From sequence record NC_061418.1: DNA of 64,000 nucleotides; one strand, 5' to 3'. A program made the translations under genes and the position numbers. Positions 1,298 to 43,411 of this stretch are shown here, piece by piece (position 1 is the first letter of the stretch; each line of letters opens with the position of its first letter). Under the pieces are notes generated by a model. It did not search any database, was not told the DNA's origin, and was given only the letters and a program-made list of their open reading frames with translations.

Positions 1298-2104
1298 TTA
1301 AATTCTCTCTACCACAGCTTTTAACCAGGCTTTAACGATGTCCTGATTCAGTAAAGAAAGTTCATTGCTACCAAACCCCGGTTCAACAATGTGTAACCGA
1401 TAATTCTGGTCGAGATTATCCACTCCTACGGCAGGGGAAATCGTATAAACTCGGTTTGAATTAAAACCAAACGAAGGCCCGTTTTCTGAGTTAAAACTAA
1501 CACCCGCCTTTAACATTACCCTCGTTTTAATTCCGGCAAAAAGCGCGTAGAAGACGACAGAGATTTTTGGTTTCAGGACTACCCCATCTTCGAATCTTCT
1601 TCCATCAAAAATAGGAACATTTATTTTACGTTCGTGACAGAATTCTGCAATTACGTCGAAGAATGGGTTTAAAGTAACAACCTTAACCGGTAACTGATTA
1701 TAAACGTCGATAACCTTATCATTCTTGAAACCAATGCCATGACGGTTTACAAGAAAATAATAAATATATTCGCCGAACCAATTCATAACCCGCCCAAGTT
1801 GAGAGACGAACTTCTCTTCTTGACCTTCAATATTTGAGTAAAGCCTATAGGGCTTCTGATTGATAAAACGAATAATTAAGTTATTGTCATCCACGCGTTC
1901 CGCAATCGATAACCAACGCATATCGGTTGTTTTGTCATGGGTAATCACCGGGATAATTTTATAATTCTCATTATCTCGTTCCGGCATAATATAATTTTTA
2001 AGCCCAGGACGTTCTTCGCCGAGCCTAATACGGAACTCTGGGGTATAAGGGTGCACCAGAGCAGTATCATTGGTGTTTTGGACTTCATTTGGTAAAATAA
2101 TCAT
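1298..2104 (-). CDS. Hypothetical protein, first gene behind an early promoter
   Basis: 268-aa ORF, AAGGA RBS. Confidence 0.8.
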   Translation of the reverse strand: MIILPNEVQNTNDTALVHPYTPEFRIRLGEERPGLKNYIMPERDNENYKIIPVITHDKTTDMRWLSIAERVDDNNLIIRFINQKPYRLYSNIEGQEEKFVSQLGRVMNWFGEYIYYFLVNRHGIGFKNDKVIDVYNQLPVKVVTLNPFFDVIAEFCHERKINVPIFDGRRFEDGVVLKPKISVVFYALFAGIKTRVMLKAGVSFNSENGPSFGFNSNRVYTISPAVGVDNLDQNYRLHIVEPGFGSNELSLLNQDIVKAWLKAVVERI

Positions 2105-2198
2105 CGTACAGTTTCCTTCTTCGTGACCAGTTAGTGGCCCGTTACGTTAGATAAGAGAATTTTAGATTCTCAGATATAAAGTGTAGAGATGTTGTCTC

Positions 2199-2225
2199 TA
2201 CACTAGAGTGATATAGACGTTAACC
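2199..2225 (-). promoter_or_regulatory. Phage early promoter (phiKZ-type) 1
   Basis: Minus strand GGTTAACGTC-TATATCAC-TCTA-GTGTA; fits 8-copy consensus. Confidence 0.7.
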
Positions 2226-2771
2226 AGATTGGGTTTCGGTATCCTTTACGTAAATACCCGTTTCTACATCTAGTGTAAAACCCACGACCTCCAGATTAAC
2301 CCGCTCATTACCTTCGGCTGTAATCTTGAAACGTGCATTACAAGTCTCAATGTTAACTTCCCCGTCGACGCAGATAAATGCATCATCGATCAGCCCCGGT
2401 ATATCGATTTCAGTCCCGTTGACTAAATCGAATACTCGGAAGTTATACGTCGTATTCTGAGTGGGGCGAAAACGCGGGTACTGAACAACGACGTGACCTG
2501 AACTTTCGAGTTCACCATCTTCGTTAAATTTAGTGTAACGGATGAGCACTTTGTCCACCGCAAAATTTGACAGTGTACGTATTTGCATATCGGTGAATGT
2601 TAACTCCCCGCTAGCAGCCGCCAAACCAACCAAATTAAACCCGACGTCAGAGTTTGCTTTAAAGAACACTTGTCCTTCTGCCTCAGGAATTCCGGTAACA
2701 AAATACTCTTGGTTTTCTTTGATGATCTTAAACTGCATTTTCTTAATATCGGTAAACATAGCTTTGTCCAC
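2220..2771 (-). CDS. Hypothetical protein
   Basis: 183-aa ORF tiling with neighbours. Confidence 0.75.
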   Translation of the reverse strand: MDKAMFTDIKKMQFKIIKENQEYFVTGIPEAEGQVFFKANSDVGFNLVGLAAASGELTFTDMQIRTLSNFAVDKVLIRYTKFNEDGELESSGHVVVQYPRFRPTQNTTYNFRVFDLVNGTEIDIPGLIDDAFICVDGEVNIETCNARFKITAEGNERVNLEVVGFTLDVETGIYVKDTETQSG

Positions 2772-2779
2772 TTAATATC

Positions 2780-3211
2780 CTATTCGATGTTGCTGTATTG
2801 ATCACCCACCCATACTACGGGCGTTAATAGTCCTCGACCGATTTCCTGCTCGCGGTCTTTTTGTTTGTCTTCGTCGGAAAAACCGTCGATGCGCATGAGT
2901 TGATGAGGTCGAAAGGCAGCATTAAAATAAGTACCCCCTGAATCTAAGAAAGATTCTGCTAATCCCTTAAAGCATCCACCAACTAACCCCCAATGAAATT
3001 CCACATAGGACCGAACTTTACCATTAACCATCCAAACTTCCCGTCCCGAGATAACTTCTGCAACATTCTCTAATCCATTTTCGTTAACGGTGACTTGAAG
3101 CATATTTCCTGGCGAAATACTAACGCCAAGAATGACTTCTTTCCCGACATTTTCTGGATTTTTAGAGTCTCGGATGACTATTGCCCGACAACCGGGTTCT
3201 AAAGGTTTCAT
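2780..3211 (-). CDS. Conserved phage hypothetical protein
   Basis: N-terminal PGCRAIVI...ENVGKEV and C-terminal HQLMRID pattern recalled from enterobacterial phage small proteins. Confidence 0.7.
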   Translation of the reverse strand: MKPLEPGCRAIVIRDSKNPENVGKEVILGVSISPGNMLQVTVNENGLENVAEVISGREVWMVNGKVRSYVEFHWGLVGGCFKGLAESFLDSGGTYFNAAFRPHQLMRIDGFSDEDKQKDREQEIGRGLLTPVVWVGDQYSNIE

Positions 3212-3588
3212 TTATCTTTCCCCTGCACAAGGAAATATTCACGTATTCCCTCAGCTAATGGACCAAAGTCAGAAACCAACTGTAATAGGGATAATTGGTC
3301 ATCAGTCTGTCGCAGCCTTTCGAGCCCTATATGAGGAGGCTTCAGACCGACAGTAGAGAGCTCTAGTTTACCGAGGTATATCTTTGTCTGCCCTCGATCG
3401 AGGAACGCATGAAATGACAATTCCGGTCCAGTGGCAAGGATCATCCCGTCGAAGGGATTCTTTCCGTTATAAACACTCCCCCTTTGAAAGTGGAAAGCTG
3501 CTGCTACTTTCTCTCCCTCTCCTAATTCTTTTTGGCAATGTTTCAACCAACGTTCAGTGAGTTCCGCTTCTTTGAATTTGAATTCCAT
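3208..3588 (-). CDS. Hypothetical protein
   Basis: ATGA overlap with next gene; GGAG RBS. Confidence 0.8.
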   Translation of the reverse strand: MEFKFKEAELTERWLKHCQKELGEGEKVAAAFHFQRGSVYNGKNPFDGMILATGPELSFHAFLDRGQTKIYLGKLELSTVGLKPPHIGLERLRQTDDQLSLLQLVSDFGPLAEGIREYFLVQGKDK

Positions 3589-3615
3589 TTTGTACTCCTA
3601 TAATCAAAATAAAAA

Positions 3616-3639
3616 GTATAGGGGATTTCTCCCCTATAC
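3616..3639 (-). terminator. Intrinsic terminator
   Basis: 10-bp stem gtatagggga/tcccctatac, GAAA loop and tttttatttt tail on minus strand. Confidence 0.85.
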
Positions 3640-3658
3640 CGGCCTTATGTTCCCAAAC

Positions 3659-5386
3659 TTAGAAGTGGCGCGTCAGGGAATAGCGAACCATTACCCCGTC
3701 TTCATTTTCCGCCAGCAGTTGGAATTCACCCGTACTGCGGTAGATCTCCACACCGGTGTTTCCCGGAATCTGCAGACCGGCTACAACCTGCCCTTCGACC
3801 TGCTCCAGTGGATTCGCCTGAGAGAATGCTTCGACAACCCGACGAACGTCACGAAGTTCGTGATTGAGGTCTTCAGCAAACAATGCGGATTGTTTCGCTA
3901 CGTTATCTTTCCAGCCCTCAAGTACCAGGAGCATCCCGCGATCTGGTGTCTGATAGCTGAAGGTTTCTTTCCCGCCCCATACTGCTGGCGTGAGCGAAAT
4001 ACCCACTACCTTGACACGTTGACCCGCTGTCTCCGACCACTGACCGATCGGGCTTCCGTTCTGATAGCTGTAGCTCGCTACGCTGTTACGTTTCTCTTCG
4101 CTGTCCCAACGATAGATCGGTTTTGCATCCGGGTCGGCCTGCGCGGTGAATTGCGCAAAGTTATAACGGCCGTAGTGCCCGCCTCTTAACTCAACGAACA
4201 GCGCTTTCGCCTTCGGTAACACCTCCGCGATAAATTGCATCAGTGAAATATCCCCGCCACTTACTACCGAGCGCTGAGGCTCTGTTTTATTCTCTTTGGT
4301 TTTCAGGCCATCGAAAATACTTCCCTTAGCTTCAGTAGCCGCTTCTGTTTCTTTCGGTTGCCAGAACCATTCCTGAATATCAGCCAGCGTAGCGAAACGG
4401 CGACGGAACGCCGACTCAATCCCTAATTCAGCGACGAGCTTTTTCGCTTTTTCCAGCTGTTCTTCAGTCGGGGCTTCGGTTGCCCGCATGTAGTTGACGC
4501 CTTCGGTACGGATGCGGAATTGGTTAATCCCGTAACGCAGATTACCGTCTTTAATATCGTCGAGCAACACCCCAACCGCCGTAGTGTGGAAATGGATGAT
4601 ATCTTTGTTATCAAAGTCCATCGCTTCCCAAACCAGGTTGGTTTTGATATTGTTGTTTTTCGTTTCATGGAAGGCGGTGTAGAGTTTGTGCCACTTCATG
4701 AATTGGTTTTTGAACTTGGTGAGGTGCTTCAGTTCACCGTATTCAAACAGTTCATAAGCGGCGCGAACGGTATTCGATTCCCAGCGCAACAGACCGCTTT
4801 GAAGAATACGCACCAACTCACGCGCCTCTGCTTCTTTACCCAGACGCTCTTCGTCGTTCTGATAAACGAAGATCAATTCTTTCGACGCGCAGTTCAGGGT
4901 ACCGTTGAAATGGCGGAATTTACCGGAATGCGGGAAAGAATAGTCAGCGACGTTTTCAACCACGATGTTTGCCACCGGGCATTTTGAGATCACTTTGTTT
5001 AACGCAGCCACGAATGCGTAGACGTTGTTCGTCGGTTCGCCTTCTGCTTCCACGTCAACGTTGAACGCCATCGACTTCACTAACCCGTCGACAATCGTTA
5101 CGTATTGACCGTATTTGTTCAACCAACGCTCACAGGTTTTGCAGCGATACTGCTGACGTTCTTCTTCCGGGAAAAGTTCCAGGTAGTGCTGATATAAACT
5201 TTTCCCCGTGCTGTGTTCAACATCGACACGATAAATGTCATCGTTGATATCGTGCAGAGAAAGATTGTGTTCAATAACGTCTACTAAGGTTTCGTAGAAA
5301 CGATCAGAAGCTTCGGTGACGGTATTAACAGCAACAATTTGATCAGTCATTCTTTTATCCTTTACAGTGAAATAGGTTCTATTCAA
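3659..5386 (-). CDS. Conserved large-phage protein of unknown function with CxxC motif
   Basis: 575 aa; YRCKTCERW, IIHFHTTAVG, YMRATEAPT, FRRRFATLADI segments recalled from a widespread myophage family; own terminator. Confidence 0.75.
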   Translation of the reverse strand: MNRTYFTVKDKRMTDQIVAVNTVTEASDRFYETLVDVIEHNLSLHDINDDIYRVDVEHSTGKSLYQHYLELFPEEERQQYRCKTCERWLNKYGQYVTIVDGLVKSMAFNVDVEAEGEPTNNVYAFVAALNKVISKCPVANIVVENVADYSFPHSGKFRHFNGTLNCASKELIFVYQNDEERLGKEAEARELVRILQSGLLRWESNTVRAAYELFEYGELKHLTKFKNQFMKWHKLYTAFHETKNNNIKTNLVWEAMDFDNKDIIHFHTTAVGVLLDDIKDGNLRYGINQFRIRTEGVNYMRATEAPTEEQLEKAKKLVAELGIESAFRRRFATLADIQEWFWQPKETEAATEAKGSIFDGLKTKENKTEPQRSVVSGGDISLMQFIAEVLPKAKALFVELRGGHYGRYNFAQFTAQADPDAKPIYRWDSEEKRNSVASYSYQNGSPIGQWSETAGQRVKVVGISLTPAVWGGKETFSYQTPDRGMLLVLEGWKDNVAKQSALFAEDLNHELRDVRRVVEAFSQANPLEQVEGQVVAGLQIPGNTGVEIYRSTGEFQLLAENEDGVMVRYSLTRHF

Positions 5387-7690: not shown

Positions 7691-7711
7691 GAGAGGGGAC
7701 GAACCCCTCTC
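7691..7711 (-). terminator. Intrinsic terminator
   Basis: 8-bp stem gagagggg/cccctctc with attatttttt tail on minus strand. Confidence 0.75.
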
Positions 7712-7720
7712 TCTTCAATG

Positions 7721-8194
7721 TCAATTAACGAAATAGATGATCACATCTTCTGACAATGTAAAGTTGGTCAGTAACGCGTCGTAGAACTTTTCTTTGCGAA
7801 CGCGCGTAAAGTAGAAATACGCTTCGTCAATGTAGACGTGCGTAATCGGCGCTTCGCGGTAAAACTGAGTGTAACCGCGCTCATACGGTTTCCCAGCAAT
7901 AGCCCTGACCTTTTCCGTCGGTGGATTAGCGTCACCGTAGAGACGCGCCTCAAAGTCATCCAGAAGCGTTTCTGTCGGGAGAAAGACCATCGAGTACTTA
8001 GGGTTTTTCTTCACTCGATCGAGTACCCATTTCGTCTTACCGGTTTGACGCGGTATTTTAAACCCGATTGTCCGACATTCGCGGAGAATGGTACCACGTC
8101 GCCAATCAATTCGTTTCGCCATTTCCGAGGTCTCAGAAATCAACGTTTTCTCTAGTGTCTGCGCTATCAATTCGAAATCAACTTTCTTAGCCAT
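7721..8194 (-). CDS. Small stand-alone P-loop NTPase (terminase/SF2-like ATPase motifs)
   Basis: Walker A-like IPRQTGKT and Walker B-like VYIDEA in 157 aa. Confidence 0.65.
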   Translation of the reverse strand: MAKKVDFELIAQTLEKTLISETSEMAKRIDWRRGTILRECRTIGFKIPRQTGKTKWVLDRVKKNPKYSMVFLPTETLLDDFEARLYGDANPPTEKVRAIAGKPYERGYTQFYREAPITHVYIDEAYFYFTRVRKEKFYDALLTNFTLSEDVIIYFVN

Positions 8195-8224
8195 GACGTC
8201 TTTAACCTTTTAACGTTTTAACGT

Positions 8225-8575
8225 TTACAAAGAATGGAACCATCCGTTTTCGTCTGGTTTCTCGGGGAATTTAAACGCGACAGTTTTATTGCGTTTAGCG
8301 AACTCTTGGTAGACCTTAGTACCGACCCAAAACCCACGCCGGATAATTTCAACATCGTCCCCGTTCAAACGGAAAGAGAACCGATGCTTCCCCGGGTCAA
8401 ACGCGATGTCCAGGAAATGACCATCTTCTAATTCGTCTACTGCGGACGTAAAGCGAAAATAGCCGCTTTTGTAAAGACACCCTGCCCGACTGGTTTGTCT
8501 GGAATTACCTACATTTTTAGGGACAGAAAGAAAACGCAAATTATCCAAATCAAGTTTCATGTTAATACCTGTCAA
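8225..8575 (-). CDS. Hypothetical protein, paralog family with 25373..25792 and 26953..27366
   Basis: LDIAFDPGKHRFSFRLNG and C-terminal NGWFHSL match the paralogs. Confidence 0.7.
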   Translation of the reverse strand: MTGINMKLDLDNLRFLSVPKNVGNSRQTSRAGCLYKSGYFRFTSAVDELEDGHFLDIAFDPGKHRFSFRLNGDDVEIIRRGFWVGTKVYQEFAKRNKTVAFKFPEKPDENGWFHSL

Positions 8576-8898
8576 TCGGTAAAGGTAATCGAAAAAGTTC
8601 CTTCGTTGCGATGCCAGTTAACCAGGAAGGGTAACCCTATTTCTTTTAAGATCTCGTTCAGAGCACTTGCAGGAGTTTCTTGTTGACTTCTCCCGAAAAA
8701 GGGATTAGCGATGGTATTTTGTAGCTCCCAGAAACGGTTACCGTTTTTCCGCTTCTTAGAGAAGCGTTTTCGAGACGTGACGGGTTGTTTCAGATAGAGA
8801 TGCAAAGGGCCTTTGTTACTCTGAACCACCACTAAACGTACAAACTGTTCGCTGTAACGTAACTCACCAAACAAAATGTCTTTGATTTTCTTTAGCAT
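8572..8898 (-). CDS. Hypothetical protein
   Basis: Short overlaps with both neighbours. Confidence 0.7.
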   Translation of the reverse strand: MLKKIKDILFGELRYSEQFVRLVVVQSNKGPLHLYLKQPVTSRKRFSKKRKNGNRFWELQNTIANPFFGRSQQETPASALNEILKEIGLPFLVNWHRNEGTFSITFTD

Positions 8899-9125
8899 TC
8901 GTTTAAATCTCCAGTAATCATCGTGGTTAGATTCCTGACTTTATTCAGGGTCGCAATGTCTTTTTCGACCGAGGCCACCGGGATGTTGTAAAAGAAAGCG
9001 ATCTCTTCTACTCGCATACCATGATTGGCAGCGTTCTCCATCGTTCGGGCGATCTGCGGATTTTCGAGTTGTGACATCAGTTCGTCAAACTCGGCCAGGT
9101 AAGCCAGATATTTGTCACGTTGCAT
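8892..9125 (-). CDS. Small helix-turn-helix protein
   Basis: GMRVEEIAFFYNIPVASVEKDI fits an HTH; paralog of 9158..9457. Confidence 0.65.
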   Translation of the reverse strand: MQRDKYLAYLAEFDELMSQLENPQIARTMENAANHGMRVEEIAFFYNIPVASVEKDIATLNKVRNLTTMITGDLNEC

Positions 9126-9157
9126 CCTTAGGTACCTTTTTACTGTGGCGGGTCAAA

Positions 9158-9457
9158 CTACTCATCGTACCCTTCTAATAGCGGGCTATGTCCGTTTTTA
9201 GAGATCCAAGCCTCCGCTAACTTATCAGATTTTTTCATAATCTCGGTGGCCTCGGTATAAATTTTAATATCATGATCGACATCATCTACCGGAACAGAAA
9301 AAGCGGCGGCAATGGTCTCGTCGTCTAAACCGTTTTCTCGGAACTGAATAAAGTAATGAGGTAAGTCAGTCCCGTGGTGTCTCGCGGTAAAAAGTTGATC
9401 GTATCCTTTCATCCAAAGTTGATGGATTTCCATTTCTTCCTGTTTTTCTTTTGTCAT
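9158..9457 (-). CDS. Small helix-turn-helix protein
   Basis: GLDDETIAAAFSVPVDDVDHDI fits an HTH; GAGGTG RBS. Confidence 0.65.
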   Translation of the reverse strand: MTKEKQEEMEIHQLWMKGYDQLFTARHHGTDLPHYFIQFRENGLDDETIAAAFSVPVDDVDHDIKIYTEATEIMKKSDKLAEAWISKNGHSPLLEGYDE

Positions 9458-9485
9458 ATTTTCACCTCTTTCTGAATTTTATACA

Positions 9486-10460
9486 TCAGTCTTCCTTACT
9501 GCTCCCGGAAACTACGCTAGTACGAATCCACTTTATTTTCAGTTGGCGATTAGGGCTATTACGAGCACCGGTCCAATAGCCGTGCCAGTGTGCCCGTCTG
9601 ATATGCGCTGCTCGCCCGGTCGTCTTCTGTCCTTTCTTTCGCTTCTCGATTTCTTCGAGGTAATCGACCCCTACCGGAAACTTACGGTGTGCGTTCAGGA
9701 ACCGTAGGCTATAGTGTTTACCCGACCGTTTCATCTGGGTAAGTCGAAAGGTATTACGGAAGTCAGCGCGGTCTTGCAACTCGTATTCCTGCGCAACAAA
9801 CAATGCCACGTTGAGTAGCTTAGTGTACGTTTCACGGTACCCGTCACGCATTAGAATATCGACAGCTTTAACCGTATCGATATTGTATTCTTTTGCAGCC
9901 CGTACAATAGTAGGGTCAGAAGCAATGACCTCCTCCAGTGTCAAACCTTCATCAAACGGGAAGAATAACGTTTGCGGGAAGCCGTTATCATTATACGGGT
10001 AAACGATCGTTAGACCCTCTTTCCCGCTCCAGTGTGTAACCGTAGAAAGGAAAATCCCTTCGATAGTCGGTTCCTCCGGGAGAGGGTGTTTGATAGGGCA
10101 CGCTGAAAGGTCGACGTACCCGGTCCAATGAGGGATAGTTTTCAAAACACTGAGCGGCAATTTACCGTTGAATTCAGAGTCCAATACATCGGGTAATAAT
10201 TCAGTAGGGATCTGATATTCAGGTTTAGTAATTTGCCAGCAATACGCCATGCTCATATGCCAAAAGATTTCACGATAATACGGGTTAGTTAAATCGATCT
10301 TATTGTTCCAGTTACGATTCTCTCCCCATATTTCGATAGGGTAGAAATACGGTGGAACCTCCCCTTTCTTTTCCGTGAGGATACGATTGAAGAAATCCTT
10401 CGCGTCCCATGCCCGTAAACGGGGTAAGAGCGTTTTCTCCACTGTCTCCAGTATTTTCAT
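9486..10460 (-). CDS. AcrVA2/FinQ-family protein (anti-defence candidate)
   Basis: 324 aa; WQITKPEY, LPLSVLKTIPHWTGYVDLS and C-terminal AHIRRAHWHGYWTG...IKW..VVSG parallel recalled Moraxella AcrVA2 motifs (WRNTLGIY, IFLNLPDWCVYVDIS, PHIRRGHWHGYWQG...VRW..FVNSG). Confidence 0.75.
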   Translation of the reverse strand: MKILETVEKTLLPRLRAWDAKDFFNRILTEKKGEVPPYFYPIEIWGENRNWNNKIDLTNPYYREIFWHMSMAYCWQITKPEYQIPTELLPDVLDSEFNGKLPLSVLKTIPHWTGYVDLSACPIKHPLPEEPTIEGIFLSTVTHWSGKEGLTIVYPYNDNGFPQTLFFPFDEGLTLEEVIASDPTIVRAAKEYNIDTVKAVDILMRDGYRETYTKLLNVALFVAQEYELQDRADFRNTFRLTQMKRSGKHYSLRFLNAHRKFPVGVDYLEEIEKRKKGQKTTGRAAHIRRAHWHGYWTGARNSPNRQLKIKWIRTSVVSGSSKED

Positions 10461-10763
10461 TTAGCTCTCCTCAGACTCGCGTGTTCCCAGGTTCCCGTTT
10501 CCGTTAAAGACGATTTGATAGTCTAACGTACCTTTACTGTTCAGCTCCTCTAAATGCTCAGAGACGGCCTCGTTATAGGGTTTGAGTAAGTGGTTCTTAC
10601 CCAGCGCCTCTAACGTCATGAAAATGATCAGGGTACTTTGATCAATCGGCGTAATGTTCTTATTCGTCAAGATCTCAATGACACGCGGAATATTCGCCTT
10701 GAGTTTCTCTAGGTCTTCATTCACCCGTAATCCCCTTATAAAACAATTCCATCCCTTTCTCAA
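10461..10763 (-). CDS. Hypothetical protein
   Basis: Abuts AcrVA2-like start and supplies its GAGGAG RBS; true start may be downstream of 10763. Confidence 0.65.
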   Translation of the reverse strand: MRKGWNCFIRGLRVNEDLEKLKANIPRVIEILTNKNITPIDQSTLIIFMTLEALGKNHLLKPYNEAVSEHLEELNSKGTLDYQIVFNGNGNLGTRESEES

Positions 10764-11322
10764 CGTTACTGCAAAAGACAGAGAAAAGCGCCTCTCGTAG
10801 CGATTGCGGCCGGAAGGGGTTATTGGCCTGCACGTGAACGTCGTAAACCGCTTTGTTTGCTAAACGTGCAGTGAACGTTTGTTTTGTCAATTTAAGCGTC
10901 TTGACGTCATGGCCGTAGGATTTACAGACCTTCCGTCCCTCGGTAAAGACCAACCCCATCGCACCGTGACCAACCAAAAGTTTGTCAGTCGGTACGAGTA
11001 GCGGGTGCTCTTTAGTACGGGGGCTAACAACCGTCCACCACATGTTCACAGGGATGAACCAATATGCATCTTTCGGGTTAAGATGCGTCCAGTCGCGGAT
11101 GCAGTTGTACATCTCTTCCTGCGTGGTCGGGCGGAAGTCGACCTGAACCCCGTTCATATTTTCACTGCGGTCATATTCGTAGATTTTACGACCCATCTTA
11201 ACCGAATAGACAAAAGCAATAATCGAATTATCTTGACGTAAAAGATTTTCTCTTGCCCATTTCCCGTATTCGATCTCTAACGCAATGACTTTTTCTGCAA
11301 TGCTGTTTTCCATCTCGTTCAC
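10717..11322 (-). CDS. Hypothetical protein
   Basis: 201-aa tiling ORF. Confidence 0.75.
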   Translation of the reverse strand: MNEMENSIAEKVIALEIEYGKWARENLLRQDNSIIAFVYSVKMGRKIYEYDRSENMNGVQVDFRPTTQEEMYNCIRDWTHLNPKDAYWFIPVNMWWTVVSPRTKEHPLLVPTDKLLVGHGAMGLVFTEGRKVCKSYGHDVKTLKLTKQTFTARLANKAVYDVHVQANNPFRPQSLREALFSVFCSNVEKGMELFYKGITGE

Positions 11323-11325
11323 CGA

Positions 11326-11700
11326 TTAATTAACTAATTTTTTCAGACTGACTTTCTCTAAGCCAGAGAACATTTCTGAGATTGAATTACCAAAACCTTC
11401 CCCTTTCAACTCTTTTTCAAGCGCGTGGTAAAGTTCGTCGAGCGTTTCATACTCTATTTTCGTTAATGAAGTTGAATAAGCCTTGGCCCGCGCCAAAATT
11501 TCTTCCTTGTAAACGTAAGCGAAAGCTTCGATTTTAGATAAATCGCGCACAGCAGCAACCGTAAGGGCACTGTGCAATTTCTGAGATGCTTTTGGGTTCT
11601 GTAGCGTCGCCGAGATATTCCCAACAAGAAACCCAATAACGTAGTCTGATTGTTTAAAGGCAGAGAATAATTTTTCATCGACGTTTTTCAGCGTGTTCAT
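11326..11700 (-). CDS. Hypothetical protein
   Basis: Tiling ORF, AAGGT RBS. Confidence 0.75.
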   Translation of the reverse strand: MNTLKNVDEKLFSAFKQSDYVIGFLVGNISATLQNPKASQKLHSALTVAAVRDLSKIEAFAYVYKEEILARAKAYSTSLTKIEYETLDELYHALEKELKGEGFGNSISEMFSGLEKVSLKKLVN

Positions 11701-11733
11701 TTTGTTTACCTTTTGTGTTTTAAGAAAAAATAA

Positions 11734-11922
11734 TTAAATATCTAAAGTGGGGTTCCACCAAGTAGCCAGACCGTCCAGCTCTTTGACAACTTTCGCCGCC
11801 TGTCGTGCAGGAATACGATACTTTCTTGCGACTCGGCGTTTTGCGCTTTTTACCGTGGTCATACAGGTAGACAGATCGTAGGTGACCAAATTATCAATTT
11901 TCTTACGCAGTGATTCTTTCAT
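11734..11922 (-). CDS. Small basic hypothetical protein
   Basis: 62 aa, K/R-rich, fills the gap between neighbours. Confidence 0.65.
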   Translation of the reverse strand: MKESLRKKIDNLVTYDLSTCMTTVKSAKRRVARKYRIPARQAAKVVKELDGLATWWNPTLDI

Positions 11923-11936
11923 TGTTTGGTTCTCTG

Positions 11937-12203
11937 TTATTGGATAATGATGGTGTTGTCGCTTTTCTTGAGGATCTGTTCACGGGTGTAGAGTTGACTA
12001 TCAAAACCCGTAGATGAGATAAAAACGCCGTTACCGAAATTGATGTAGCAGCCATCGCTATAAATGACTTCCACTTGTGAATAAAGCCGTTTCGTTAGTT
12101 TACACTGCTCTAAATCGTATTCTTTCTTTTTAGAAAGAAAATAAGGCGTTGCCAACAGCATTAGAATAACCAAACCAAGAAGAACATATGTCAATTTTTT
12201 CAT
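11937..12203 (-). CDS. Small membrane-anchored or secreted protein
   Basis: MKK followed by hydrophobic LTYVLLGLVILMLLATPYF. Confidence 0.7.
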   Translation of the reverse strand: MKKLTYVLLGLVILMLLATPYFLSKKKEYDLEQCKLTKRLYSQVEVIYSDGCYINFGNGVFISSTGFDSQLYTREQILKKSDNTIIIQ

Positions 12204-12460
12204 GCGAGTTTCTCTCTGAGTGCCATGTAAAGTAAACCGACTTGATCGGCGATGATTTTTCCTCGGCTGATGACAATCGGTTTCTGCGCTCCGTAGAACT
12301 CAATCGTTAACTTGATAAAAGGGACATCGCCAAGTATCCCTTTTATTTTACGACATTCTTCTTCCTTGCGGACGTTTCTGACATCACGAAGAAAGAAAAT
12401 GTAATTCTTATCGTTATCGTCAACAATGACTTTATTACCTACGATACTAAACTTAGGCAT
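12200..12460 (-). CDS. Hypothetical protein
   Basis: ATGA overlap with next gene. Confidence 0.7.
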   Translation of the reverse strand: MPKFSIVGNKVIVDDNDKNYIFFLRDVRNVRKEEECRKIKGILGDVPFIKLTIEFYGAQKPIVISRGKIIADQVGLLYMALREKLA

Positions 12461-12806
12461 GTTTTCTTACCTTAACTAAGGGAACATTAATCGATTTAAC
12501 GTTGTTGATTTTATAGCGCTGATTAGAAACCCCAAAGGAGCGTACTCGGATTCCAGTCTCTCCGACAAAACGTAGGTGAGAAAGATCAGAGAGCAAAGTA
12601 ACAAAGTCTCTTTTGGTTATTCGGCTCCATCCCAGAATAGCAACGGCGTTTTCCCCGACCAAACTCTCGATACAGATTTGAACAGGGTGGGTGTTAGGGG
12701 CGGCCAGAGACCGCCCCTCAATGACTGATTCTAACCAATTGCTAAGAGGAGTAGATTCCTCTAACGTGGGGATACGGTATTCTTTAACTGCCATAGCTGT
12801 TCTCAA
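12453..12806 (-). CDS. Hypothetical protein
   Basis: Tiling ORF. Confidence 0.7.
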   Translation of the reverse strand: MRTAMAVKEYRIPTLEESTPLSNWLESVIEGRSLAAPNTHPVQICIESLVGENAVAILGWSRITKRDFVTLLSDLSHLRFVGETGIRVRSFGVSNQRYKINNVKSINVPLVKVRKHA

Positions 12807-13284
12807 AGCGGAAGAAAGAACCCTCGATGGAGACCATCACCTTGCTTTCCGCAGGGTACAATTCGTCTAAGGCATCTGCCATCACTTTCTCAATATCGAT
12901 GTCGCCCCTCACACACGGACAAATACCGCCAGTGATTTCTTTAGTGGCGGTCGAGTCAAGCGTGAGCTTCATGACAAGGTCACAGTCAGCATCGACACAC
13001 GCCATGACACTGACGTTGTCTCTTTCATAGTCCAACTGGAAGCGGTAGTTATCATTGCCTGAATTATGGATACGGAATTCCTCAGGGATTTCCCCCGTCT
13101 TGTTACATTTCTCAAGAAGCGAAAGGACAAGATTGACGTGTTCTTTGACTAAATGAACAACGTTGTTTTTCATTTTCTCTACGGCTTCTTTTTGTCCTTT
13201 AACATGGGACATAATCGCTTTGAAAGCGACGTCAGAAGAAACAAAGGTTTTTAAAACTGCAGCAGAACGAAATTCAGTGGACAT
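12784..13284 (-). CDS. Hypothetical protein, first gene behind early promoter 2
   Basis: GGAG RBS, 166 aa. Confidence 0.8.
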   Translation of the reverse strand: MSTEFRSAAVLKTFVSSDVAFKAIMSHVKGQKEAVEKMKNNVVHLVKEHVNLVLSLLEKCNKTGEIPEEFRIHNSGNDNYRFQLDYERDNVSVMACVDADCDLVMKLTLDSTATKEITGGICPCVRGDIDIEKVMADALDELYPAESKVMVSIEGSFFRFENSYGS

Positions 13285-13339
13285 TTTTTATCTCCGTGTT
13301 AAGTACAAACTATTTAAAGACCAAGTAATTTTTGTTACC

Positions 13340-13366
13340 TTCACTCAAGTGATATAGGCTTTAAAA
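13340..13366 (-). promoter_or_regulatory. Phage early promoter 2
   Basis: TTTTAAAGCC-TATATCAC-TTGA-GTGAA. Confidence 0.85.
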
Positions 13367-13382
13367 CGAATCGAAACAAAAA

Positions 13383-13414
13383 AAAAGAAAGAGGGAATGA
13401 CCCCTCTTTCTTTT
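13383..13414 (-). terminator. Intrinsic terminator after AAA ATPase
   Basis: aaaagaaagaggg/ccctctttctttt stem with long T run on minus strand. Confidence 0.85.
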
Positions 13415-13421
13415 ATTAGCC

Positions 13422-14778: not shown

Positions 14779-14805
14779 TTCAATAACGTGATATAGATCT
14801 TAAAA
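14779..14805 (-). promoter_or_regulatory. Phage early promoter 3
   Basis: TTTTAAGATC-TATATCAC-GTTA-TTGAA. Confidence 0.85.
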
Positions 14806-14821
14806 CTTTTAGAAAACAGGA

Positions 14822-31300: not shown

Positions 31301-31327
31301 TACATCTAAGTGATATAGACTTGAAAA
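31301..31327 (-). promoter_or_regulatory. Phage early promoter 5
   Basis: TTTTCAAGTC-TATATCAC-TTAG-ATGTA. Confidence 0.85.
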
Positions 31328-31357
31328 CAAATCCAAAAGAAAAAGAGAACATAGAAC

Positions 31358-31860: not shown

Positions 31861-31887
31861 TGCAATCAAGTGATATAGATGTTAAAT
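31861..31887 (-). promoter_or_regulatory. Phage early promoter 6
   Basis: ATTTAACATC-TATATCAC-TTGA-TTGCA. Confidence 0.8.
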
Positions 31888-32433
31888 GATTTCGATATTG
31901 AAGGCGGGTTCGGGGATGCCTTTAAAAGCGCATTCGTTACTGACGAGTTCACTCAGACCACCGCCGATATAAACATCTTTAAGTCCGCGTTTGCTATAAG
32001 TACGTTTGCCGATGGGACTTTCTGCGGAGCAATCGTTCCGGAAAAGAAGATAAATTCTTTGCCCATCAAAATCGGTGTAGATTGAATAATCAGTAACGTC
32101 TTCTTGTTCGCCAGGTTCAGCAAAACAAAAATCAATAACGTTCGCGGAGAGTAGCCAGAAAAACCGAAGGTATTCCCGTAACAGATCGATATGAATAACA
32201 GAGAACTCGCCGCCTTTGTTAATTTTTTCTATCAGCTCTTTAACCGGAACTTCAGAAGAGGGCGAACCAACACCGTGAAGATCTCCCAGAATTTCCCACG
32301 CTGGATCGTTATCCCGTTGAACAAAAAGAAACTCTCCACTTTTCTCGTCATACATCACTGATGCCAACTCGGATTCGAGAAGTTTTAACCCTGCACGGTA
32401 ATTCTCAATTAAAGAAGTTTCTGTGTTTTCCAT
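31882..32433 (-). CDS. Hypothetical protein
   Basis: Abuts upstream gene; GAGGT RBS. Confidence 0.8.
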   Translation of the reverse strand: MENTETSLIENYRAGLKLLESELASVMYDEKSGEFLFVQRDNDPAWEILGDLHGVGSPSSEVPVKELIEKINKGGEFSVIHIDLLREYLRFFWLLSANVIDFCFAEPGEQEDVTDYSIYTDFDGQRIYLLFRNDCSAESPIGKRTYSKRGLKDVYIGGGLSELVSNECAFKGIPEPAFNIEII

Positions 32434-36456: not shown

Positions 36457-36744
36457 TTAATGTCTTTTTTGCCGTATCCAAAGATTCTTAGTTGGAATCC
36501 AGATAGCAACAATTTCCCCATGAACATGTTTAACGCGCGCCCCTTCTGGCCATCTGGGAATTACTTTTGTAATCTCTTCAACTTCATGATACCAAAGACG
36601 ATCAGGCAAAGTAAAAGCCAAAACACGCAAGTAACCGTACTTCATGGAACTTTCTTTACCGTCTATGACCATTTCGATCCACTTCCCGGAATGTTCATAA
36701 CTTTCAAGAATTCCTATTTTTTCTACGGAATCAGAATCGCTCAT
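36457..36744 (-). CDS. Hypothetical protein
   Basis: GAGGTG RBS. Confidence 0.75.
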   Translation of the reverse strand: MSDSDSVEKIGILESYEHSGKWIEMVIDGKESSMKYGYLRVLAFTLPDRLWYHEVEEITKVIPRWPEGARVKHVHGEIVAIWIPTKNLWIRQKRH

Positions 36745-36756
36745 TTACACCTCTGG

Positions 36757-37197
36757 CTATTTTTCAGGCGGTAGGCCGTTATTAAAACGGTTCGCTTCCA
36801 TCACCGGGAGATTCGCTTCTGTCGGGACGTAGATCACTTGGTTCTTAGTTTGCTGTAAGCTATCTACCCAAAGGTAACGGAGATACGCTTCGTTGTTCTT
36901 CAAGCTGTCACCAATGATCTTGTTCGCCTTGGCGACACCGCCTGCACGAATAACCTCTGCCTCCGCCAAACTTTTAGCGGACTCTTTCTTAGCCTCTGCT
37001 TCCTGTACGGCGATCTGACGATCCTGCGTGGCTTTCATCAGAGCGGCTTTCCCCGCCATCCCCTGCTGCCAAACATTGTAGTACGGGCACCCCGCCATCA
37101 GCAGCACTATAAACGCAACAATGCCGATGGCCGCCCATTTACCCACCTTCTTTAATAACGACTTTACGTCGAAATCATTATCAGCGTAACGATTCAT
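36757..37197 (-). CDS. Membrane-anchored coiled-coil protein of a widespread phage family (resembles SPFH/band-7 C-terminus)
   Basis: TM then AEAKKESA...AEVIRAGGVAKANKIIGDSL...YLRYLW...IYVPTEANLP. Confidence 0.75.
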   Translation of the reverse strand: MNRYADNDFDVKSLLKKVGKWAAIGIVAFIVLLMAGCPYYNVWQQGMAGKAALMKATQDRQIAVQEAEAKKESAKSLAEAEVIRAGGVAKANKIIGDSLKNNEAYLRYLWVDSLQQTKNQVIYVPTEANLPVMEANRFNNGLPPEK

Positions 37198-37227
37198 TTC
37201 TATTTCCTATTTTTTAAACCAGTAAAC

Positions 37228-37917
37228 TTATTTGTTGGTTTTGGTGATATACCACTTCCAAAGGCCGTAGAAAGCATTCATCAAGAATACTGCCCACTGT
37301 GCCACCTGCGCCCATGAACCCGGTTGATTAAGCGCCGGGATCACCCACAGATAAATCGTGACGCAGTTGATAATGATCCAGAGAATCCATTGTTCTGGCT
37401 GCTGCTTGATCATCATCCACATGGCGATGAGCGATGCGACTAAGCAGAACGCGTCTAATGCAGGAAACGGATCCTGCGTAGTTTTCAGGTATTCGGTCAG
37501 GCCATACCAGAAGATAACCCCAACAACCAGATAAGTTATCACGTCACGTAAAGTGATCGTTTTAACCGCTACGTCAGCTTTGGCTGGAGTTTTGCCCAGG
37601 TCTTTCGTCCAGTAATAAATACCGATAAACTGCATGGGAAGGTAAATAGCGTTCAACGCCGCATTGGCATAAAGGCCGGTATTGTACGAAACAATACCGT
37701 AGGTAATTACGCCAATCGTCCCCCAGTAATAATTAGAGACGCGACCCTTCGCCACCAGAATCACGCAGACGACGTTAGTCAGCGCTGCCGTGAATTCTAA
37801 CGGACTGGCTTGCCAGCTCCCTAATCCGACGACGATTAACGCTACGATCAGCCAAAAGTATTCGACTTTCTTCCAGTGCGCAAAGTCAGTGAAAGTTTTC
37901 ATTACCAATGAGTTCAT
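37228..37917 (-). CDS. pnuC: Nicotinamide riboside transporter PnuC
   Basis: Multi-TM; CVILVAKGRVSNYYWG, YLPMQFIGIYYW, DPFPALDAF, EQWILWIIIN. Confidence 0.92.
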   Translation of the reverse strand: MNSLVMKTFTDFAHWKKVEYFWLIVALIVVGLGSWQASPLEFTAALTNVVCVILVAKGRVSNYYWGTIGVITYGIVSYNTGLYANAALNAIYLPMQFIGIYYWTKDLGKTPAKADVAVKTITLRDVITYLVVGVIFWYGLTEYLKTTQDPFPALDAFCLVASLIAMWMMIKQQPEQWILWIIINCVTIYLWVIPALNQPGSWAQVAQWAVFLMNAFYGLWKWYITKTNK

Positions 37918-42915: not shown

Positions 42916-42942
42916 TTCACTCAGGTGATATAGATTTTAAAA
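42916..42942 (-). promoter_or_regulatory. Phage early promoter 7 (inside 3' end of NADAR-like gene)
   Basis: TTTTAAAATC-TATATCAC-CTGA-GTGAA. Confidence 0.85.
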
Positions 42943-43411
42943 GCCGTCGAGTTTCTTCCCAAAACTCCACTAACCATTCTCCGCTTTTAGGCGTAACAAC
43001 TTTAACGTCGTCTTCCCAGACACGCGCCCCTTTCTCCATTCGCCAATTACCGAAAACGTAGTAATGGGTAAAAGGTAGGGTTGAATTGACCAGCGCTTGG
43101 TATTGGTGTTTGTAAGTATTCAATTTCGCCAGATTAGCAGCTTTGATAATCGAGAGGAAATCGGGATGATGAACCACTTCCAGTTTCTTCCCAAATGCTT
43201 TCGCCTCGTTACCGTACAAGCCTCTGAGGTATTGGTGTTTAAAACCGGTTTTTGCGTAATACCAAAACCCTTCCATACTTTCAAAGTTTCCGTACTCAGG
43301 GTGAATGAAAGGTGTCTTTGGAAAGTGAGAGAGAAAGAACCCGAGACGGTTCTTGGACTTAGAGTAAATGTTGATGTGGTCAATACCGTCATTGTTTGGG
43401 TTCAAAGTCAT
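42917..43411 (-). CDS. NADAR-superfamily protein (T4 gp30.3-like)
   Basis: LSHFPKTPF...FESMEGFWYYAK, GLYGNEAKAFGK, ALVNS..FTHY parallel recalled T4 gp30.3 LSNFAQWPF...LEGFLQGCK, GLSGLAAQQAGR. Confidence 0.7.
   Translation of the reverse strand: MTLNPNNDGIDHINIYSKSKNRLGFFLSHFPKTPFIHPEYGNFESMEGFWYYAKTGFKHQYLRGLYGNEAKAFGKKLEVVHHPDFLSIIKAANLAKLNTYKHQYQALVNSTLPFTHYYVFGNWRMEKGARVWEDDVKVVTPKSGEWLVEFWEETRRLLKSISPE

Follow-up and report, generated by a model that had tools for sequence, protein, structure and literature searches.

Two small genes, gp017 and gp016, lie directly downstream of an AcrVA2-like gene, gp018, in the Klebsiella jumbo phage KpLz-2_45 (genus Siatvirus; NC_061418, 296,707 bp), and their position raises the question of whether they encode repressors of the Aca type. 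The window referred to below is the whole stretch that was analysed, 64,000 nucleotides of record NC_061418.1; its bases 7700-13400 agree with the phage record at 100% identity and at unchanged coordinates. An earlier note on this DNA had read the trio as an acr-aca layout, in which two tandem helix-turn-helix (HTH) paralogs, perhaps as a heterodimer, would regulate an anti-defence operon and so make the neighbouring open reading frames anti-defence candidates by association. The gene positions and the minus-strand order gp018, gp017, gp016 are as it gave them, and both of the peptide strings that it quoted are present. The two proteins are nevertheless probably not Aca-type autorepressors. 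The best explanation at hand, to which we would give somewhat less than an even chance, is that gp016 and gp017 are acidic mini-proteins with a sigma-region-4-like fold, expressed early, that work through contact with protein or through nucleic-acid mimicry. What is established here is the genes themselves, their paralogy, fold class, charge, operon frame and distribution; protein binding and the choice of target go beyond these and are inferred.

The relationship between the two proteins emerges only in profile comparisons. BLASTP of gp016 against gp017 returns no alignment, and the best local alignment is a 23-residue motif with a score of 43, against 23.3 ± 4.2 for shuffled sequences (4 of 2000 shuffles reach 43). 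With family alignments of metagenomic and phage relatives, hhalign gave 67% at four sequences per family and 90.2% (E 1.5e-6, 46 columns) once the alignments were deeper. In six-frame searches of the 297-kb genome, gp017 is the top non-self match to the gp016 profile (E 1.7e-4), and gp016 ranks second with the gp017 profile (E 5.6e-3), behind gp344. The gp016 profile also finds remote gp017-family proteins (E 5.6e-8 and 8.6e-7). Because profile comparison, reciprocal hidden Markov model (HMM) matches and matching four-helix models agree, gp016 and gp017 can be classed as distant paralogs, about 20% identical in the core. The proposed mutual paralogy thus holds at the level of profile and fold, but the two genes do not form a pair apart: their motif recurs in gp344, gp327 and gp250 of this genome. 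In these extra members it takes the form RG-x-x-x-EEIA...(P/S)VG-x-V.

The mini-HTH family accordingly numbers at least five dispersed members in KpLz-2_45, with further members in FBKp24, PhiEaH1 and PCH45. An exhaustive HMM search of 1.8 billion representatives yielded only 4 gp016-family clusters at E < 1e-10, beyond which the profile retrieves tandem multi-HTH repeat proteins. Neither PADLOC, PHROGs nor Pfam has anything above threshold for gp016 or gp017. The fold class is an established one. The family itself is uncharacterised; it occurs in a single group of jumbo phages, is multi-copy, and is unusually acidic for HTH proteins. We suggest that gp016 and gp017 are diverged members of a lineage-specific, multi-copy family carried by nucleus-forming jumbo phages like PCH45, PhiEaH1 and FBKp24.

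AlphaFold2 models of the two proteins agree in topology: the N-terminal helix is long, and behind it come the three helices of the HTH, the last of them long as well. The predicted helices span residues 3-22, 32-41, 46-52 and 57-88 in gp017 (pLDDT 92.9) and 2-18, 26-34, 39-45 and 50-75 in gp016 (pLDDT 91.1). Among the top fold matches of both models two groups prevail, region 4 of extracytoplasmic function (ECF) sigma factors (AlgU, SigE, SigH, SigR, WhiG) and LuxR/NarL DNA-binding domains (DesR, EsrB, DosR), in both cases with non-significant scores. For gp016, VIA gives Z 7.0 with AlgU, 6.7 with SigE region 4 and 7.3 with a chain of the RNA-guided transcription complex 9n9q, values within the noise range of the tool; for gp017 the chains matched by gp016 score Z 5.7-6.6, which is likewise within the noise range stated for helical models. 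Sigma70_ECF is also the commonest weak Pfam match, found in four of seven gp016-family members (best 14.8 bits against a cut-off of 21.1, E 0.027) and in no member of the gp017 family. ESM Atlas look-alikes of both proteins score below 0.9 and merely hint at an HTH. A LysM-like reading of the motif, raised by a weak match to 6qup, was rejected, as both models are all-helical. The HTH pattern seen in the letters has its support in the predicted fold only; no Pfam HTH model reaches its gathering threshold with either protein. The family, small and confined to one clade, can be assigned with moderate confidence an HTH fold of the sigma-region-4/LuxR class.

Charge is one feature that sets the family apart from these domains. 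In sigma region 4 and in LuxR domains, the first turns of the last helix touch DNA through basic and polar side chains. The positions that would make these contacts are rich in Asp and Glu in the gp016 and gp017 families. Net charge was compared over a segment of 31 residues that starts at the conserved Gly and ends halfway along the last helix. Throughout the gp017 family (pI 4.4-5.1) this segment carries a net charge of -6 to -9, with 7-9 acidic residues and 0-1 basic ones; in gp017 itself, where it runs from G43 to I73, the net charge is -8 and one residue is basic. The gp016 family (pI 4.4-5.7) ranges from 0 to -7, likewise with few basic residues. Negative charge on the surface that would face DNA makes protein binding the likeliest activity and operator binding unlikely.

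The likeness to region 4 of sigma-70 (ECF) factors and to LuxR-GerE domains consists in a predicted four-helix domain that ends in an HTH and in the motif G-hydrophobic-x-x-E-E-I-A...V. Unlike those domains, gp016 and gp017 stand alone, with neither a region 2 nor a receiver domain; they also differ in falling below Pfam thresholds, in fold scores that are not significant and in the acidic character of the contact positions. In the mechanism that we propose, each mini-protein would be a four-helix domain whose last three helices form an HTH of the sigma-region-4/LuxR type, and would use that scaffold to bind a protein, as a decoy or adaptor, or to occupy a basic nucleic-acid-binding surface. 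Candidate targets are, in the host, the proteins of the transcription machinery with which sigma region 4 associates and, in the phage itself, the basic C-terminal domain of gp018. An analogy, of function only, may be drawn with proteins of the T4 AsiA type, which are small, acidic, all-helical early proteins with an HTH-like motif that does not serve DNA binding. No search returned a sequence or fold match to them, however, and KpLz-2_45 does not depend on host RNA polymerase as T4 does.

Several observations weigh against this proposal. The sigma-region-4 assignment is drawn from enrichment and topology, with no significant match: Foldseek E values exceed 0.5 and VIA Z does not exceed 7.3, values that count as noise for small helical proteins. 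Net charge is a proxy, some acidic HTH proteins do bind DNA, and the HTH window of KpLz-2_45 gp016 is itself neutral. Finally, the adjacency of the two genes to gp018, kept even where a distant relative has rearranged the locus, fits a regulatory or partner role. The features on which the following paragraphs draw are collected in Table 1.

Table 1. Features of the gp018-gp017-gp016 locus, its transcription unit and dispersed members of the mini-HTH family
Feature	Position	Strand	Description or basis
gp018, AcrVA2/FinQ-family protein, 324 aa	9486-10460	-	PDB 7ci1, phrog_6160, PF26125 on homologs
gp017, acidic four-helix protein, 99 aa	9158-9457	-	pI 4.8, net charge -11; AlphaFold2, family alignment
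gp017 HTH core, residues 32-73	9239-9364	-	region aligned to gp016 by hhalign
gp016, acidic four-helix protein, 77 aa	8892-9125	-	pI 4.6, net charge -5; AlphaFold2, family alignment
gp016 HTH core, residues 26-66	8928-9050	-	hhalign columns 23-68; weak Sigma70_ECF region-4 match
Mosaic cassette, replaced by a ~50%-identical allele in MJ359	9131-9400	-	sliding DNA identity
Transcription unit gp026 to gp013, 14 small genes, mostly of unknown function	7721-13284	-	tightly packed or overlapping open reading frames between promoter motif and terminators
Promoter motif GTTTTAAnnnCTATATCAC at the head of the unit; putative early promoter of phiKZ type	13349-13367	-	five copies in the window, shared consensus
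Intrinsic terminator of the upstream AAA-ATPase (gp027) unit	13383-13414	-	14-bp stem and T-run
Intrinsic terminator closing the unit, 3' of gp013	7691-7711	-	8-bp GC-rich stem and T-run
gp344, outside the window	NC_061418 191939-192283		pI 7.9, near neutral
gp327, 74 aa, outside the window	NC_061418 207425-207649		pI 4.5; two genes from annotated RNA polymerase beta subunit
gp250, outside the window	NC_061418 264074-264406		shared HTH motif

The neighbouring gp018 matches the AcrVA2 chain 7ci1_A of the PDB in two collinear stretches (E 2.8e-7; 323 vs 324 residues) and phrog_6160 (E 2e-36), and its homologs carry the Pfam family PF26125, AcrVA2-like, in precomputed annotations. The C-terminal HIRRxHWHGYW motif of AcrVA2 is kept in gp018; H286, R288 and H291 of AcrVA2 align to it and are invariant in the clade alignment. 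These three residues are required for AcrVA2 activity (bioRxiv 10.1101/2022.11.29.518452). Judged by its sequence, gp018 is a true member of the AcrVA2/FinQ family, in agreement with the label that it had been given. The resemblance extends to equal length, collinearity and the His/Arg motif. The family counts FinQ among its members and is widespread on mobile elements, in most cases where Cas12a is lacking (bioRxiv 10.1101/2022.11.29.518452). It is not tied to Cas12a in hosts such as Klebsiella and probably has other targets. The last 65 residues of gp018 are basic (pI 10.5, charge +9).

The main rival to the proposal above, unlikely in our judgement, is that the mini-proteins are dedicated partners of gp018: gp016, alone or together with gp017, would attach to gp018 and act on it as adaptor, specificity subunit or antidote, the three genes forming one functional module. 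The basic C-terminus of gp018 would suit acidic partners, and every gp016-family gene with enough context, from six lineages, lies near an AcrVA2-like gene, with variable insertions between the two. A wider search for the locus with the gp018 alignment reached close relatives only. In the most distant lineage, a 264-kb contig (L011), gp018, gp016 and gp017 are 52.6%, 31% and 33% identical to the KpLz-2_45 proteins. The gene order there is gp017-gp018-gp016, and the trio abuts or overlaps while several other neighbours are missing or have moved. Because all six lineages form a single syntenic clade, shared ancestry explains much of the linkage between gp016 and gp018; the rearranged yet contiguous trio of L011 exceeds what would be expected of inertia alone.

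The history of gp017 speaks against such a partnership. Sliding identity between KpLz-2_45 and MJ359 falls to 34-64% over 9131-9400, against 96-100% in the flanks, with sharp borders; the swapped segment extends from about codon 19 of gp017 to the intergenic spacer. At the protein level gp017 is 49.5% identical in the two phages, as compared with 97-99% for gp018 and gp016 (gp018, 97.5%), and so it was exchanged while gp018 remained nearly unchanged. The gp019-gp021 region also differs between the two phages. In FBKp24, gp017 is absent and its slot is occupied by two unrelated genes. gp017 is therefore exchangeable and dispensable. Its loss in FBKp24 also tells against a gp016-gp017 heterodimer being obligate. 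Rapid evolution and the exchange of cassettes, as seen here, are typical of phage genes that interact with the host.

The two kinds of gene also occur independently of each other. In PhiEaH1 (NC_023610) two gp017-like acidic proteins, gp043 and gp042, are encoded in tandem by overlapping genes (record positions 36674-37524; rows 2 and 3 of the BFVD matches), and no AcrVA2-like gene was found in that phage. PCH45 has one member of the mini-HTH family, and again no AcrVA2-like gene was found. On the metagenomic contigs L045, L047 and L049, gp017-family genes (40-52% identity) lack any AcrVA2-like or gp016-like open reading frame within 5 kb. Conversely, the AcrVA2 homologs of the Erwinia genera Alexandravirus and Risingsunvirus, of the Dickeya genus Salmondvirus and of Salmonella phage SA002 have no mini-HTH neighbour. 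The conserved synteny that the earlier note would have looked for among related phages is thus present in near relatives and, in rearranged form, in L011, but it fails with the loss of gp017 in FBKp24 and with the separation of the mini-HTH family from AcrVA2 elsewhere. A further point against a dedicated partner is that AcrVA2 is active by itself in heterologous hosts (bioRxiv 10.1101/2022.11.29.518452).

One observation in PhiEaH1 points towards a functional link with gp018. The C-terminal tail of gp042 aligns with residues 265-293 of gp018, the region of the AcrVA2 functional motif, with a score of 55 against 26.5 ± 4.4 for shuffled sequences; none of 2000 shuffles reaches 55, and the pair is one of about 357 that were inspected. 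The likeness may be due to chance or to a shared peptide motif. A more elaborate version of the partnership, which we regard as improbable, is that gp017, gp018 and gp016 make up a clade-specific three-gene module in which the mini-proteins belong, as adaptors, specificity subunits or antidotes, to an AcrVA2/FinQ-type silencer, one acting via the nascent chain of its target. If so, they would be the first accessory subunits known for this widespread family, and the gp042 tail could be understood as a shared docking peptide.

How gp016 and gp017 are expressed bears on both the proposed early mini-proteins and the Aca hypothesis. KpLz-2_45 encodes a homolog of the tubulin PhuZ (43% identity to PhiEaH1 PhuZ, E 3.6e-67), and an RNA polymerase beta subunit is annotated in its record; its gene content therefore indicates a jumbo phage of the nucleus-forming type with its own transcription apparatus. 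A relative, FBKp24, has a nucleus shell (bioRxiv 10.1101/2021.03.02.433402). The three genes belong to a single transcription unit that begins behind the second of the promoters predicted in the earlier note, as it had proposed, and that is bounded by a terminator on either side. A terminator is annotated in the FBKp24 record at the place that matches the upstream one. All five copies of the promoter motif in the window lie on the minus strand, where 0.06 would be expected by chance, and conserved bases continue for about 12 nucleotides downstream in the alignment of all five. The other four copies are at 14788-14806, 31310-31328, 31870-31888 and 42925-42943, and the 19 nucleotides that follow the copies at 42925 and 13349 are identical but for one mismatch. 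The early promoters of phiKZ are AT-rich and are read by an RNA polymerase injected with the virion (PMC10914365). By analogy, the promoter of this unit is probably of the early class and read by a virion RNA polymerase.

Within the unit, the intergenic gaps around gp017 measure 28 and 32 bp and hold ribosome-binding sites, among them the Shine-Dalgarno sequence AGAGGTGA that precedes the gp017 ATG, and thus leave no room for a private promoter. gp016 and gp017 sit in mid-unit, behind a promoter type shared with at least four other units. We therefore picture them as co-transcribed with gp018 from a generic phage promoter that would probably be early. Near 13285-13420 the sole inverted repeat is the upstream terminator, and no operon-specific inverted repeat was found at the promoter. 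A palindrome after the promoter motif, TCACTTGAGTGA, was considered as an operator and rejected, since it belongs to the consensus of all five promoter copies.

These findings leave the Aca hypothesis, that gp016 and gp017 are HTH repressors, possibly heterodimeric, which bind the operon promoter and damp an anti-defence operon, decidedly improbable. There are likenesses to Aca1 and Aca2: small proteins with an HTH fold in the models, whose genes follow an Acr-family gene directly and share its transcript, with a linkage kept in near relatives. The tandem pair of PhiEaH1 would fit two cooperating subunits, and a tandem arrangement in two distant genera is compatible with gp016 and gp017 working as a pair. 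There are also several differences. No similarity to curated HTH or Aca families was detected for either protein, and PDB profile searches with both families, at E up to 10, returned no Aca chain, their matches being a designed HTH-like repeat protein and chance hits. The recognition helices are acidic, the promoter offers no operator-like repeat, and it is a generic promoter in a phage with its own RNA polymerase. The position of the candidates in the middle of a 14-gene unit is a further difference.

The pattern of conservation is also the reverse of that expected. An aca gene is normally the conserved marker beside variable acr genes, which is the basis of aca-guided discovery. In the present case gp018 is the more conserved gene, at 84-85% identity across genera, against 58-73% for gp017 and 39-48% for gp016, so that the usual acr-aca relationship is inverted. 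The occurrence of the HTH family without an acr gene, and of the acr gene without the HTH family, also counts against the Aca hypothesis. Still less likely is a role as sigma-like or promoter-specificity factors of the phage non-virion RNA polymerase, or as DNA-binding regulators at promoters elsewhere, for which the sigma-region-4-like topology, the nearness of gp327 to the polymerase beta subunit gene and the almost neutral charge of gp344 could be cited, but which is opposed by the acidic HTH of gp016 and gp017, by the want of a sigma region 2, and by poor conservation and the loss of gp017 in FBKp24, unexpected in a core transcription factor.

The consequence for the rest of the unit is that its genes are not justifiably regarded as anti-defence candidates by association. 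Taken at face value, the Aca reading would have attached that label to a dozen jumbo-phage genes of unknown function, and the shortcut is unsafe here. The unit at 7721-13284 resembles any common stretch of uncharacterised early genes in a jumbo phage. With the Aca label set aside, there is still an uncharacterised family of small acidic proteins with an HTH fold, multi-copy and quick to evolve. The phages that carry it form a nucleus and do without host transcription, and one pair of its members, in a Klebsiella phage, is persistently linked to a gene of the AcrVA2/FinQ type. Once identified, the partners of these mini-proteins could bring to light a new way of interfering with the machinery of the host, or else cofactors of AcrVA2-family proteins, which would be the first known.

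Some observations concern other genes. No other small gene of the unit comes near the constraint seen in gp022 (11734-11922, minus strand), which encodes a basic protein of 62 residues (pI 10.2): it is 92-94% identical across genera, compared with 30-60% for its neighbours, and 65% identical in L011. The last gene of the unit, gp013 (7721-8194, minus strand), matches phrog_2586 (E 2e-20) and, weakly, a terminase ATPase model and the PADLOC model 'HTH'. Its ortholog in MJ359 is annotated as 'terminase large subunit', which looks like over-annotation for a protein of 157 residues. On the related phage contig L047, precomputed Pfam annotation places an intein with a LAGLIDADG endonuclease inside the thymidylate synthase gene at positions 2050-4440.

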